Positions 538 to 6,431 of a DNA stretch of 64,000 nucleotides are shown here, piece after piece. How positions within the stretch are numbered: position 1 is the stretch's first letter; every line of letters starts with the position of its first letter. A model generated the notes under the pieces. The model worked only from the letters and a program-made list of their open reading frames with translations, did not search any database and was not told the origin of the DNA. The stretch lies in sequence record MT661596.1, one strand, 5' to 3'. The position numbers and the translations under genes are program-made.

Positions 538-613
538 GTTCTGCTCATCTAGCGGCTTAGGATTACGGGTTTTCAGTCCGTCCACCGGGGTTCGATTCCC
601 CGGCAGAACACCA
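538..613 (+). tRNA. tRNA-Glu(TTC)
   Basis: GTTCTGC/GCAGAAC acceptor, loop TT-TTC-AG, TTCGATT T-loop, encoded CCA. Confidence 0.93.
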
Positions 614-623
614 AACATGGAAA

Positions 624-726
624 GGTGTGTTGGCAGAGTGCGTGAATGCGCTAACCTTTAAGTTGGTTAGTATAGGCTGACTCAGAAATGATAGGCTTAT
701 CGTGGGTTGGAATCCCACACACGTCT
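624..726 (+). pseudogene. aberrant class II (long variable arm) tRNA-like gene, possibly Leu(TAA)-derived
   Basis: Acceptor GGTGTGT/ACACGTC, D arm TGGCAGAGTGCGTGAATGC, anticodon arm CTAACC-TTTAAGTT-GGTTAG (8-nt loop), about 30-nt variable arm, T-loop TTGGAAT, no CCA. Confidence 0.6.
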
Positions 727-2378: not shown

Positions 2379-2457
2379 TAGTTTAAGCCGTTGGTTAACA
2401 AGATTAAACCAGATATAATGGTTTAATAAGACTGGCTTTCACCCGGTCTTAAAAACA

Positions 2458-2558
2458 GCCGAAGTCGTCTAAGTGTGAAGACAGCATGACTATATGTGAC
2501 CGTGACTTACCACGAAGCCACACGTCATGAAGATGTGGTTTTAACAACCACCTTCGGC
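2458..2558 (+). ncRNA. four-way-junction structured RNA domain
   Basis: P1 2458-2464/2552-2558, P2 2467-2470/2479-2482, P3 2485-2490/2524-2529 with nested helices, P4 2535-2540/2546-2551; loop-loop AAGT/ACTT. Confidence 0.55.
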
Positions 2559-2567
2559 AACCCAATA

Positions 2568-2666
2568 CAGTCAATCAACTGATGAGCCGTGGACTTTAAA
2601 CTGGCGGCGAAACGGATGGCGGTTCATATACCACTTAACAGTTGTTTATAGCCATCCGTATTGGTT
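2568..2666 (+). ncRNA. type I hammerhead ribozyme
   Basis: CTGATGA 2579-2585, stem II GCCGT/GCGGC, GAAA 2609-2612, 9-bp stem III ACGGATGGC/GCCATCCGT, GUA cleavage triplet 2658-2660, stem I AATCAA/TTGGTT. Confidence 0.92.
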
Positions 2667-2771
2667 AAGGCGTTACGTTGTTAGGACGTAGCCCATAGGT
2701 TTGCATTGCAGGCTTATGGGATGCGATTGCCTGGCATCAGCGATGTGTCCATTACAAACTCCTCATAAGTC

Positions 2772-2803
2772 AGGTCGGGGTGAGAATCCCGACCTTTATG
2801 CCG
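2772..2803 (+). terminator. hairpin + TTATGCCG 3'-end element
   Basis: AGGTCGGG/CCCGACCT stem then TTATGCCG. Confidence 0.6.
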
Positions 2804-2832: not shown

Positions 2833-2842
2833 CCTACATTAC
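2833..2842 (+). promoter_or_regulatory. early-type promoter motif
   Basis: CCTACATTAC upstream of 2896 ORF. Confidence 0.65.
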
Positions 2843-2895: not shown

Positions 2896-3084
2896 ATGAA
2901 ATGGATTATTGGTATCATTGTTAGTATAGTGTGTTTTAACATATATGTGGTGATGAATGAATCGTATACATTACCTTATGCAATAGCACATTGTGTTGTG
3001 ACAATACCAACCCTCATACTCGTGGCGTGGCAGAGAGGCGATATATGTCCATTCAACAATTCTCCTACTGATAAGAGGGGGTAA
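2896..3084 (+). CDS. small membrane protein
   Basis: 62 aa, two hydrophobic segments, AAGGTG RBS. Confidence 0.7.
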   Translation: MKWIIGIIVSIVCFNIYVVMNESYTLPYAIAHCVVTIPTLILVAWQRGDICPFNNSPTDKRG

Positions 3085-3086
3085 CT

Positions 3087-3272
3087 ATGCGATTAGCAGC
3101 GATAGTAGCTTTAATCATAATGCTTCTATGTGTCACTATTGTTATTGTTCAATCTGAATATGACCCGACCCTAGACCAGTTAAAAGGGTTCATCGTGGGC
3201 TCTATATCAGGTGTGTTCATCACACTTATATCAGCATATATAGTGCATAGTTCATTATGTAAGAAGCAGTAG
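3087..3272 (+). CDS. small membrane protein
   Basis: 61 aa, two hydrophobic segments, GAGGGG RBS. Confidence 0.7.
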   Translation: MRLAAIVALIIMLLCVTIVIVQSEYDPTLDQLKGFIVGSISGVFITLISAYIVHSSLCKKQ

Positions 3273-3313
3273 CATAATCCAAAAGGGGTGTTAATACACT
3301 CCTTTTTATGCCG
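3272..3313 (+). terminator. hairpin + TTATGCCG element
   Basis: AAAAGGGGTG/CACTCCTTTT stem then TATGCCG. Confidence 0.6.
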
Positions 3314-3871: not shown

Positions 3872-4459
3872 ATGACAACCGAAACTAAATCGAAACCAAT
3901 CCACTTAGGTAGCTACACATTACCAGGTATTATGATTGGCGTCGCTATTATTAATGTGGATAAGGTGTCCGTCACCACCAAATACACATTAACCAATAAT
4001 GTAACCCACAAGAAGATTGGCGCGTTTGAAAATAAAATGGATATGATTCCAAACATGCCACCTGAAGGACATGTTCTTACATTAGAACAAATTATCCGTC
4101 GAGCTGCATCGTATTTAATGTCTCGCTTGTGGGAAGACAAAGACGATGAAAACATTGACATGGTTTACCGTGCCGCTAAAATGTTATCTCAAACCTTTGT
4201 CATCAGTCAGTCAGAGCCTATTCATGGTGAATTCAAAGACGGTGAAAATGTTATTAAATGGCAGCGTGTAGTTTATAACGGAGCGATTGAAACAGGTTTC
4301 TCCATTGGTGATGCGCGTAAAGTTATTGCAATGGATGAATTCAAAGATAAAGTCATTGTTGATAAAGGTGCTTTCCTAACACTGCGTGTCGATATGCGTG
4401 AAGAAAGTGTACCATCACCAGAACTTATGTATAAGCTTTGTGGTCGTGTCGATTTCTAA
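3872..4459 (+). CDS. hypothetical protein
   Basis: 195 aa, AAGGA RBS. Confidence 0.8.
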   Translation: MTTETKSKPIHLGSYTLPGIMIGVAIINVDKVSVTTKYTLTNNVTHKKIGAFENKMDMIPNMPPEGHVLTLEQIIRRAASYLMSRLWEDKDDENIDMVYRAAKMLSQTFVISQSEPIHGEFKDGENVIKWQRVVYNGAIETGFSIGDARKVIAMDEFKDKVIVDKGAFLTLRVDMREESVPSPELMYKLCGRVDF

Positions 4460-4462
4460 TAA

Positions 4463-4494
4463 CGGCATAAAGGGTAGCCCAAACGGGCTACCCT
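4463..4494 (-). terminator. hairpin + TTATGCCG element (minus strand)
   Basis: CGGCATAA then AGGGTAGCCC-AAAC-GGGCTACCCT between convergent genes. Confidence 0.65.
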
Positions 4495-4518
4495 GGTTAT
4501 GTTCACTTCTTTTTTTTT

Positions 4519-5370
4519 TTAACGTTTCGGTGTCATCATTCGGATAGCACGGTGCTTACGTAACTTGTCAGCAAACGCAGCAGTCTTAGTCCAGGTTTCT
4601 TTTAAGTAATCATCGTAATTTTGAAGAGAGTCAGAGTACGTCTGAAGTGTATCTTTAAAAGCACCTAACTCCATACCACCTACTAACTGACCTTGGTCTA
4701 CTTTTATATTAAGTTTGTTGTATATGTACGCTTGAACAGCATACCTTACAAGTTTAGCAAACTTAGGGTAACTTCTAGCTGGGATGTTATTGAGTTCAGG
4801 GTCGTTTGTTACAACACAACGAAGGGTGAGTTGGTTAGTCACCATCTGAGTCTCGTAAATACAAATTTGGTTTTGACCGATGATAGCTACGTTAGTTAAT
4901 TGTATCTCTGGAGCAGGTGAGTAAGACTGCAGCATAGACTGCATCCCTTGTTGGAACGCTCCATTACCACAACCTGGATTATATGCACCAGAGTAAGCAC
5001 CAATACCATTACCAGGTGCGCCAAATAACGTATCTGGAAAACCATACATCACAGCAAGTATAGATGTTATTACTCTACCACCAGTTAACGTCATAGGTAC
5101 TCTGAACGTTGTTGTGAAGTGGTCATGTTTGATAAACTCTACTCCACGTAACGGTATGATAACCTGTGTTCCACCGACGGCGTCACAATCGCGTCGAACT
5201 TTAGCATCAATAACTTTTGTTCTTATGGCATCGGCAAGTGATACGTTTAATACACGTCTTACACCAGAGTGATAATAAGCGGTGTCATTCTCAAGAAAAG
5301 CTGCTTCAAGAAGCTCCCTTGGAATACCACCCCATAAAAGGTCACTTAGTGCATGGTCAATTGCGCTCAT
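4519..5370 (-). CDS. conserved chimallivirus-type hypothetical protein, divergent from phuZ
   Basis: 283 aa, GAGG RBS; position next to PhuZ; function not assignable. Confidence 0.7.
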   Translation of the reverse strand: MSAIDHALSDLLWGGIPRELLEAAFLENDTAYYHSGVRRVLNVSLADAIRTKVIDAKVRRDCDAVGGTQVIIPLRGVEFIKHDHFTTTFRVPMTLTGGRVITSILAVMYGFPDTLFGAPGNGIGAYSGAYNPGCGNGAFQQGMQSMLQSYSPAPEIQLTNVAIIGQNQICIYETQMVTNQLTLRCVVTNDPELNNIPARSYPKFAKLVRYAVQAYIYNKLNIKVDQGQLVGGMELGAFKDTLQTYSDSLQNYDDYLKETWTKTAAFADKLRKHRAIRMMTPKR

Positions 5371-5450: not shown

Positions 5451-6431
5451 ATGAATATGTCAAAACGTTTAACACGTCTATATGCATGTGGTGGTGCTGG
5501 TATCAATATTAGTGCTGGTATTACCGATAATGTTGACGTGCCTGGTTTCAGTGATACCAAAGTATCTCGTGTAGACACCAGTGTGGCTAACCTTACAACT
5601 AACATGCCAGAAGACTCTGTGTTTGTTCTGGCAGGTGCTGATGGTTCCGGTAAAGAGCGTCGCCATAACTACCGACCTGTTGTTGCAGCACTTCCTCAAA
5701 TCTTAACACTACACGCACCATGCGACTATAACATCGTGTTGTTCTCTGCATCGGGCGGTTCTGGCTCTGTAATCGGTCCTGTTATCCTGGGTGAGCTACT
5801 AAAACGTAAATTACCATCAGTTGCTATTGTTATTGGCACTACAGGTTCTAAAACTGAAGTACAAAATAGCATCGATACGTTGAAGTCATTATCCGGTGTT
5901 TGTAAAGCTTCTAAGTTACCATTAGTCATGGTCTACCTTGAAGTTAACCAACATAACAGCCAAGCTGATGTTGACCGTCAGGTTACTGCAGCTATTACCC
6001 AACTGCTTAGCTTGTTCGACTCACATGCATCAGGTCTAGACTACAAAGATATCACTAACTTACTGCAATACACTAATATTCGCGGTGGTGTGGAATCTCT
6101 GATGTCTATGGATATTTACATCGATAACGACATTGAAGCTATTACAGGTTCGTTCCCACCATCTATGGCGACTGTGTATAAAGATGATGAACGTCCATCT
6201 CTTCCTGTCACTCCTGGTTATCATGCAACCGGCACTCGTGATAAATCCGTGACTGATGAACGCATGAAAGTAACCATTCACTTTGTTATCACTGAACCAC
6301 CTGTGAAAGAGCATTTTGATGGTTTGGAAACCCGCCTTAAAAATATCATCGATGGTGAAAACGCTGTTGGCAACATCGCCGGTGTTTTAAGCGACGACGA
6401 TGAAGTTGATGGTTTAGGTATGGTACTGTAA
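5451..6431 (+). CDS. phuZ: phage tubulin PhuZ
   Basis: ACGGAGIN, VDTS, GSGK, SASGGSGS tubulin signature and acidic C-terminal tail DDDEVDGLGMVL. Confidence 0.95.
   Translation: MNMSKRLTRLYACGGAGINISAGITDNVDVPGFSDTKVSRVDTSVANLTTNMPEDSVFVLAGADGSGKERRHNYRPVVAALPQILTLHAPCDYNIVLFSASGGSGSVIGPVILGELLKRKLPSVAIVIGTTGSKTEVQNSIDTLKSLSGVCKASKLPLVMVYLEVNQHNSQADVDRQVTAAITQLLSLFDSHASGLDYKDITNLLQYTNIRGGVESLMSMDIYIDNDIEAITGSFPPSMATVYKDDERPSLPVTPGYHATGTRDKSVTDERMKVTIHFVITEPPVKEHFDGLETRLKNIIDGENAVGNIAGVLSDDDEVDGLGMVL

Follow-up and report, generated by a model that had tools for sequence, protein, structure and literature searches.

A hammerhead fold in the tRNA island of Proteus phage 10

We analysed bases 124001–188000 of Proteus phage 10 (MT661596.1), a 64-kb stretch referred to below as the window, whose own positions are used throughout. 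Proteus phage 10 is a 223-kb phage with Proteus mirabilis as its isolation host. In its tRNA island, the + strand carries a sequence that folds as a type I hammerhead ribozyme, and this element and its flanking RNAs are the subject of this study (Table 1). ARAGORN identified tRNA-Asp, tRNA-Glu, tRNA-His and tRNA-Ile within 455–1517 on the + strand; all of the neighbouring tRNAs and most of the neighbouring open reading frames (ORFs) share this orientation. GenBank carries no annotation across 2379–2895, and the only ORFs listed there encode 41 and 48 amino acids (aa), both from TTG starts. The ORF-free stretch around the ribozyme, noticed in an earlier reading of the DNA that was made without database searches (the sequence-only reading), is thus real. 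That reading also placed the element at the end of the tRNA region, which holds but understates the context: the ribozyme lies directly 3′ of a conserved tRNA-like cloverleaf and 5′ of a discrete structured RNA.

The bases and pairs of the catalytic core were all found where the sequence-only reading had put them. Stem III begins with the pairs A15.1–U16.1 (A2612–U2659) and C15.2–G16.2 (C2613–G2658). Stem I, given there as AAUCAA/UUGGUU, is indeed a helix of 6 base pairs (bp), one of them G–U, and the topology is type I because stem I is the open helix. Hammerhead geometry most likely places the cleavage site after A2660. Constraining the fold of 2567–2672 to the hammerhead gave −27.2 kcal/mol, compared with −27.3 kcal/mol for the unconstrained minimum free energy (MFE); in this folding model, the hammerhead secondary structure is iso-energetic with the MFE structure and would carry no folding cost.

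A descriptor covering all three hammerhead topologies on both strands found exactly one hammerhead in the window. When the window was shuffled 1500 times with its dinucleotide counts preserved, type I motifs with stems of at least 5/4/4 bp arose at a rate of 0.0007 per window. None of the 1500 reached the observed stems of 6/5/9 bp, and none reached a summed stem length of 20.

Table 1 Features of the hammerhead locus, in window positions. Activities and product ends are predicted.
Feature	Position	Strand	Description
tRNA-like cloverleaf RNA	2458–2562	+	Directly upstream of the ribozyme
Cloverleaf acceptor stem	2458–2464 with 2552–2558	+	7 bp
Cloverleaf D arm	2467–2470 with 2479–2482	+	4 bp
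Cloverleaf 'anticodon' arm	2485–2529	+	45 nucleotides (nt); apical loop ACUUAC 2505–2510
Cloverleaf T arm	2535–2551	+	
Cloverleaf tail A-ACC	2559–2562	+	
Whole hammerhead	2569–2666	+	Type I; core, three stems and pseudoknot
Pseudoknot 5′ strand AGUC	2569–2572	+	Pairs with GACU 2592–2595 in loop II
Stem I 5′ strand AAUCAA	2573–2578	+	Six pairs with 2661–2666
Catalytic core C3-U4-G5-A6-U7-G8-A9 (CUGAUGA)	2579–2585	+	Read directly from the sequence
Stem II GCCGU with GCGGC	2586–2590 with 2604–2608	+	G2586–C2608 first, U2590–G2604 wobble last
Loop II	2591–2603	+	13 nt; pseudoknot 3′ strand GACU 2592–2595, conserved UUAAA
Core G12-A13-A14 (GAA)	2609–2611	+	Read directly from the sequence
Stem III ACGGAUGGC with GCCAUCCGU	2612–2620 with 2651–2659	+	9 bp
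Stem III insert/loop	2621–2650	+	30 nt
H17 = A	2660	+	Predicted scissile bond A2660/U2661, from hammerhead geometry
Stem I 3′ strand UUGGUU	2661–2666	+	5′ end of the predicted 3′ product
Predicted 3′ cleavage product	2661–2803	+	Structured non-coding RNA of ~140 nt; ends in hairpin and TTTATGCCG
Terminator-like hairpin, then TTTATGCCG	2772–2795, then 2795–2803	+	
CCTACATTAC	2833–2842	+	Promoter-like recurrent motif; marks the start of the next unit, with small ORFs from 2896

Conservation at a fixed site in Chimalliviridae

Nucleotide BLAST of the region against a phage collection returned only Proteus phage 10 itself. As close DNA relatives were lacking, we reached more distant ones through the neighbouring PhuZ tubulin gene and through degenerate patterns. 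The window encodes PhuZ at 5451–6431 (match to phrog_4733, 'tubulin PhuZ', E = 2.6e-96), and five IMG/VR contigs encode PhuZ proteins 48–56% identical to it. Four of the five PhuZ-linked loci carry CUGAUGA, a 5-bp stem II, the conserved loop II, the pseudoknot and GAA upstream of PhuZ; the contig of the fifth (L004) begins downstream of the ribozyme site. Searching with the loop II pattern CTGATGAGNNGNNGACNTTAA and a second pattern, followed by a filter for a closed stem II, added further members from viral and metagenomic contigs. In the metagenome and genome collections the loop II pattern matched mostly by chance, and a match was retained only if GAAA followed a closed stem II; L076 was dropped from the family, as its pseudoknot, stem III and stem I are all absent.

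BLAST with the 45-nt 5′ half of the element recovered the family in 11 records of cultured jumbo phages. The carriers include the Erwinia phages Ea35-70, Simmy50, Special G, Bosolaphorus, Mortimer, Rebecca, AH06, pEa_SNUABM_37 and pEa_SNUABM_48, and the Salmonella phage SA002. None of the GenBank records returned by two 5′-half searches annotates a ribozyme at the site. In the Simmy50 record a hypothetical protein is annotated over it, and in SA002, AH06, Ea35-70 and pEa_SNUABM_48 the element occupies an unannotated intergenic gap of ~600–1000 nt. Three of these four regions have a tRNA gene upstream; for the stretch taken from AH06 none is listed. In AH06 and Ea35-70, the PhuZ tubulin gene lies a few kb downstream of the hammerhead, as in the window, and the gene order at the ribozyme and PhuZ in Proteus phage 10 matches that of these two Agricanvirus phages.

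Loss of the core in close relatives had been named beforehand as a finding that would speak against a ribozyme. Instead, the same ribozyme was found in synteny even where PhuZ identity is only ~50%, and also in cultured members of Chimalliviridae, the family to which the genus Agricanvirus belongs. Judged by PhuZ tubulin and synteny alone, the window has a Chimalliviridae context. The chimallivirus origin assumed in the sequence-only reading thus agrees with the encoded PhuZ and with the synteny with Agricanvirus, whereas NCBI taxonomy lists Proteus phage 10 as unclassified, with no formal placement among chimalliviruses.

Other hammerheads came up in these searches. The stem II pattern CTGATGAGCCG...CGGCGAAAC matched 47 loci in IMG/VR, mostly real hammerheads that are unrelated to the window copy. 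Two loci, L010 and L019, have the same 6/5/9 stems as the window copy, with no alignment homology beyond the core. Four IMG/VR loci (L012, L038, L049 and L051) hold arrays of 8–18 hammerheads, types I and II mixed, on one strand and ~300–800 nt apart; these fit the familiar arrangement of phage ribozymes around short genes and are unrelated to the window copy beyond the core.

Covariation of the three stems

All family members parse as type I hammerheads. For L003, Rfam suggested a type III reading; this is impossible in L006 and in the window, whereas type I is possible in all members. Stem III ends in a short hairpin in most metagenomic members and carries inserts of 30 to ~105 nt in the chimalliviruses, so that inserts range from 0 to ~105 nt over the relatives. 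Because of this length variation MAFFT could not align the 3′ halves, and distal stem III was excised first. Covariation was therefore counted over 14 sequences, with stem III represented by its five proximal pairs.

In this alignment 89.9% of cells are paired, compared with 69.6% in shuffled alignments, and none of 500 shuffles was as high. Compensatory changes occur in 14 of the 22 pairs, including 6/6 in stem I, 2/5 in stem II and 4/5 in stem III; in stem II 100% of cells are paired. The covariation score is 0.60, falling to at most 0.17 when the partners are slid by 1–3 columns. All three stems thus covary, as the sequence-only reading had suggested checking. The core, CUGAUGA and GAA, is invariant over the 14 members; in the family as a whole only N7 varies, being C in pEa_SNUABM_48. 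Across the family, H17 is A, C or U and never G, and GAC-N-UUAA is kept in loop II. The element therefore combines the hammerhead core, A15.1–U16.1 and an H17 other than G with three covarying helices.

These data bear on whether a hammerhead-like motif arose by chance in AT-rich intergenic DNA. The descriptors are short, large scans yield false positives, and Rfam did not confirm the motif (see below). Yet the observed stems were reached in none of the 1500 shuffles, and the motif is conserved in synteny, with compensatory changes, in many phages. We regard a chance origin as already refuted by this conservation and covariation, and give it a practically negligible probability.

A pseudoknot linking loop II to the 5′ flank

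The sequence-only reading proposed that loop II pairs with the 5′ flank, and two such pairings are possible in the window, CAGU 2568–2571/ACUG 2600–2603 and AGUC 2569–2572/GACU 2592–2595. AGUC/GACU fits a covarying pseudoknot found across the family, whereas CAGU/ACUG has no family counterpart. The family pseudoknot pairs N-N-G-U-C-G, just 5′ of stem I, with C-G-A-C-N-N at the start of loop II. In the 14-member alignment, the window and L006 pseudoknots were 1 nt out of register, so the counts from that alignment understate the pairing; with the register corrected by hand, 18 members were tallied. At the variable inner pair, seven have C–G, five U–A, four A–U, one U–G and one a mismatch. AH06 has GUCU/AGAC in place of the GUCG/CGAC found elsewhere, a double compensatory change from G–C to U–A.

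The consensus of these sequences runs N-GUCG, a stem I of 5–6 nt, CUGAUGA, a 5-bp stem II, loop II C-GAC-N-UUAAA, and GAA. The window departs from it in having GUCA for GUCG, GGAC for CGAC, a 13-nt loop II and a spacer shorter by 1 nt. By this pattern, the window copy belongs to a pseudoknotted type I subfamily of phage tRNA islands, which we define here. In other hammerheads, stem I/loop II pseudoknots were found by mutation and rescue to be required for fast cleavage, and ~40% of hammerheads are estimated to carry one (Perreault et al. 2011, PMC3088659). The predicted AGUC/GACU pseudoknot would supply the stem I/stem II tertiary contact that marks fast natural hammerheads.

In two relatives, a short reading frame lies next to this contact. 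SA002 (L294, ~4970–5001) and pEa_SNUABM_48 (L297, ~4975–5001) have a mini-ORF of 7–8 codons with a Shine-Dalgarno sequence, and its UAA stop overlaps the 5′ strand of the pseudoknot (AUC-UAA-GUCG). Termination at this codon could leave a ribosome in the way of the pseudoknot and thereby link cleavage to translation. No such mini-ORF exists in the window.

Covariance models and points against the assignment

At gathering level, Rfam reported only the four tRNAs in the window and no hammerhead. To search independently of the window, we built a covariance model from 10 members that included neither the window nor any of the PhuZ-linked clade. This model ranked 2568–2627 first in the window (21.1 bits, E = 4.6e-4; second-best match, E = 1.2), and it gave the PhuZ-linked and cultured relatives scores of 26–54 bits, from their 5′ halves.

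Several observations weigh against a functional hammerhead in the window. The check by Rfam models that the sequence-only reading had called for failed, as the window copy stays below the gathering score in every Rfam hammerhead model; at a permissive E-value its best match, to RF00008 (Hammerhead_3), reaches 17.1 bits against a cutoff of 48.5 (E = 0.92) and spans the 5′ half only. Compact relatives also fall short, for example L068 (19.9 against 56.3 bits). In our own model, too, the window alignment stops at the 5′ half, since the model does not bridge the 30 nt inserted in stem III. Some relatives have imperfect helices: stem III of L002 contains a 3×2 internal loop, stem II of Ea35-70 a G·A mismatch and a bulge, and stem I of L006 a bulge. 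In addition, the window pseudoknot is the weakest of the family, with 4 bp where others have 5–6, and it lies 1 nt nearer the core, as in L006.

The Rfam result can be traced to the models. Across RF00163 (Hammerhead_1), RF00008, RF02276 (Hammerhead_II), RF02275 (HH9), RF02277 (HH10) and RF03152 (RAGATH-1-hammerhead), scores were 17–27 bits against 48.5, or 19.9 against 56.3. The core and stem II of the window family do align to RF00008, and for a compact member the 3′ two thirds of RF03152 give a type I alignment. Because the compact relative L068 fails as well, we take the failure as a limit of the models and not of the ribozyme. The curated Rfam hammerhead models, as tested, miss this subfamily at their thresholds.

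The same observations invite the view that the fold does not cleave in vivo and serves as one domain, structural or protein-binding, within a longer stable RNA extending from the cloverleaf across the hammerhead-like junction to the downstream domains. Stem III inserts of 30 to ~105 nt, the imperfect helices of some relatives, the high degree of structure throughout 2458–2803 and the lack of an Rfam match at threshold would all suit such a domain. Selection for a fold alone, however, would not need the exact unpaired bases, and all catalytic-core positions are kept among phages whose PhuZ is ~50% identical, H17 is never G, and the pseudoknot, of a kind known to speed cleavage, covaries. We therefore hold a non-cleaving fold to be highly improbable.

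Structured RNAs on both sides of the ribozyme

The upstream cloverleaf is predicted to be more stable than expected by chance (2458–2562, z = −3.96; none of 200 shuffles folded as well). A joint alignment of the cloverleaf region yielded no consensus structure, and anchoring on the ACTTAC loop gave one; all seven pairs of the acceptor stem show compensatory changes. The apical loop of the 'anticodon' arm has 6 nt in the window, whereas homologues in L002, L003, L006, SA002, AH06, Ea35-70 and pEa_SNUABM_48 have a near-invariant 7-nt loop, AACUUAC, with A at position 33. The element is tRNA-like and is not a tRNA by the usual criteria: ARAGORN made no call for it, and it did not match the Rfam tRNA model up to an E-value of 10. 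Its long arm also departs from the tRNA pattern, in which a 5-bp stem bears a 7-nt anticodon loop with U33.

The cloverleaf lies upstream of the hammerhead in L002 (~4459–4561), L003, L006, L294, L295, L296 and L297. The AACUUAC loop resembles a Lys(CUU) anticodon loop except that position 33 is A and not U. A sigma-70-like promoter, TTGGTT-17 nt-TATAAT, lies at 2391–2419 (+), ~40 nt 5′ of the cloverleaf; the promoter scan overlooked it because its −35 hexamer matches at only 3/6 positions. This promoter could give the module of cloverleaf, ribozyme and downstream RNA its own transcript by the host polymerase.

In the wider family the upstream neighbour varies. In L057 and L136, the CCA end of an ordinary tRNA-Leu(UAA) lies 0–1 nt before the hammerhead pseudoknot; a T arm and ACCA precede the hammerhead in L290, and a hairpin does so in other members. 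Outside the chimallivirus clade, the hammerhead often follows tRNA-Leu(UAA) directly. Six loci outside that clade (L057, L068, L113, L136, L159 and L174) have homologous ORFs 185–270 nt past the cleavage site. The L057 ORF matches Pfam Amidoligase_2 (PF12224; E = 1.3e-06), and a related ORF lies further downstream in L176, with a match below cutoff. Our literature search found no paper joining hammerheads and amidoligases.

Downstream of the predicted cleavage site, 2661–2806 has an MFE of −56.6 kcal/mol (z = −4.10; none of 200 shuffles folded as well). Equivalent RNAs occur in L002, L003, L005 and L006, and 13 of the 58 predicted pairs show a compensatory change. Rfam gave no convincing family match for this RNA. 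The motifs at and beyond its 3′ end recur: with at most one mismatch, TTTATGCCG has 23 matches in the window (12.8 expected) and CCTACATTAC has 21 (10.2 expected), both above their frequency in shuffles. TTTATGCCG followed by CCTACATTAC ~30 nt further on occurs at 2795/2833 and again at 3305–3313/3343–3352, and CCTACATTAC is kept after the hairpin in L002, L003 and L006. From position and recurrence, the hairpin with TTTATGCCG and the motif CCTAYATTAC look like terminator–promoter junctions; on this reading, cleavage would yield a separate 3′ RNA of ~140 nt. CCTAYATTAC presumably resembles the phiKZ early promoter consensus; a literature search on the promoter word TATATTAC returned nothing useful.

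Two ORFs on the + strand, 2896–3084 (62 aa) and 3087–3272 (61 aa), lie between promoter-like and terminator-like motifs and are unannotated in GenBank. An AAGGTG ribosome-binding site accompanies the first, whose N-terminus is hydrophobic. Searches of Pfam and PHROG gave no match for either ORF.

Proposed processing of the tRNA-island transcript

Collectively, these results show that 2569–2666 (+) is a genuine type I hammerhead maintained in evolution, which most likely cleaves in cis and so separates two stable non-coding RNAs. We propose that a tRNA-island transcript of the + strand would fold and that the pseudoknot would dock stems I and II. The 2′-OH of A2660 would then attack its 3′ phosphate, cutting the chain between A2660 and U2661. 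The 5′ product would comprise the cloverleaf and the ribozyme body and end in a 2′,3′-cyclic phosphate; the 3′ product would be the structured RNA of ~140 nt (2661 to ~2800), starting with a 5′-OH and ending in the terminator-type hairpin and TTTATGCCG. Because the hammerhead is of type I, the ribozyme would stay on the upstream product; the tRNA-like 3′ end would therefore be left untrimmed, and the downstream RNA would acquire a defined 5′ end. The ribozyme would thus act as a built-in, protein-independent processing site that sets the end chemistry of both RNAs in a conserved module. It may in this way help to mature phage RNAs, as proposed in the sequence-only reading, which put their synthesis in the phage nucleus.

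The main rival is that the ribozyme processes an mRNA leader. Here the hairpin at 2772–2795 would not terminate transcription, and cleavage at 2660 would place a 5′-OH on the mRNA of the small ORFs, tuning the stability or translation of 2896–3084, 3087–3272 and genes beyond. The six members outside the PhuZ-linked group with ORFs 185–270 nt downstream would fit this, as no obvious terminator intervenes, and so would the layout associated with amidoligase in L057. A precedent exists in a phage hammerhead with a cleavage site no more than 3 nt from the 5′ end that was mapped for a major transcript (Perreault et al. 2011, PMC3088659). In the window and its PhuZ-linked relatives, however, a conserved hairpin with UUUAUGCCG and then the promoter-like CCTAYATTAC stand before the next ORF, and the terminator/promoter motif pair recurs at 3305 and 3343. 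On balance, we judge leader processing in the window to be quite unlikely and favour the separation of two non-coding RNAs.

A further-reaching version of the two-RNA reading is that the hammerhead is the central processing element of an undescribed non-coding RNA module in enterobacterial chimalliviruses and that the ends made by the ribozyme are functionally required. We offer this only tentatively and consider it rather unlikely. If it were true, the ends might mark the RNAs for an RNA repair or ligation enzyme of phage or host, or protect them from decay that depends on a 5′-monophosphate. Cleavage might also release a tRNA mimic directed at host defences that target tRNAs or at the translation apparatus.

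Relation to known ribozymes and tRNA-like RNAs

Prokaryotic hammerheads cluster in phages (PMC3088659, PMC6155905), where they are abundant and where their biological role is still an open question (PMC6155905). The closest known relatives are the type I hammerheads of Perreault et al. 2011 (PMC3088659), which share with the window family the core, the three-way junction, the open stem I, the intergenic site in phages and a short Watson–Crick pseudoknot that holds stems I and II parallel. The window family differs from them in that its pseudoknot uses the single strand 5′ of stem I, with the GUC/GAC centre fixed, and in its conserved loop II, C-GAC-N-UUAAA. Further differences are the stem III inserts of 30 to ~105 nt in the chimallivirus copies and the occurrence as a single copy at a fixed syntenic site and not as an array flanking ORFs.

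Theta ribozymes, which are minimal ribozymes resembling that of hepatitis delta virus (HDV), are likewise small self-cleaving ribozymes beside phage tRNA genes (Kienbeck et al. 2024, PMC10879173). The window family represents another ribozyme class with another geometry. HDV-like ribozymes cleave at their own 5′ border, which frees the 3′ end of a tRNA; in contrast, a type I hammerhead has its cleavage site on the 3′ side, so that it stays on the upstream tRNA or tRNA-like RNA and frees the RNA downstream. The tRNA cluster of phage T4 also encodes stable, tRNA-like, non-decoding RNAs, species 1 and 2, and we know of no ribozyme next to them. The window cloverleaf differs from these in its long 'anticodon' arm and its conserved AACUUAC loop.

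Both phage-borne hammerheads and type I forms with a pseudoknot are thus already known (PMC3088659, PMC6155905). As far as we searched the literature, conservation at a fixed site across a Chimalliviridae clade, the large stem III inserts, and the position with a conserved tRNA-like cloverleaf on one side and a structured RNA on the other are new. No paper turned up that describes a hammerhead in jumbo phages or one adjoining phage tRNAs, in keeping with the remark in the sequence-only reading that no characterised role for a chimallivirus hammerhead was known to it. Most known phage hammerheads come from uncultured or poorly tractable phages and often occur in arrays. The present family offers a single syntenic copy with defined neighbours in cultured, nucleus-forming jumbo phages of Erwinia, Salmonella and Proteus, and is a practical place to test the function of phage hammerheads.

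Additional observations in the tRNA island

Within the tRNA island, the tRNA-Glu called by ARAGORN at 538–613 (+) is absent from the Rfam gathering-level list. Next to it, at 624–726 (+), lies a 103-nt tRNA-like sequence that ARAGORN did not call and that scores 36.6 bits with the Rfam tRNA model; its anticodon loop is ~4 bases longer than usual, and its variable arm measures 27 nt.

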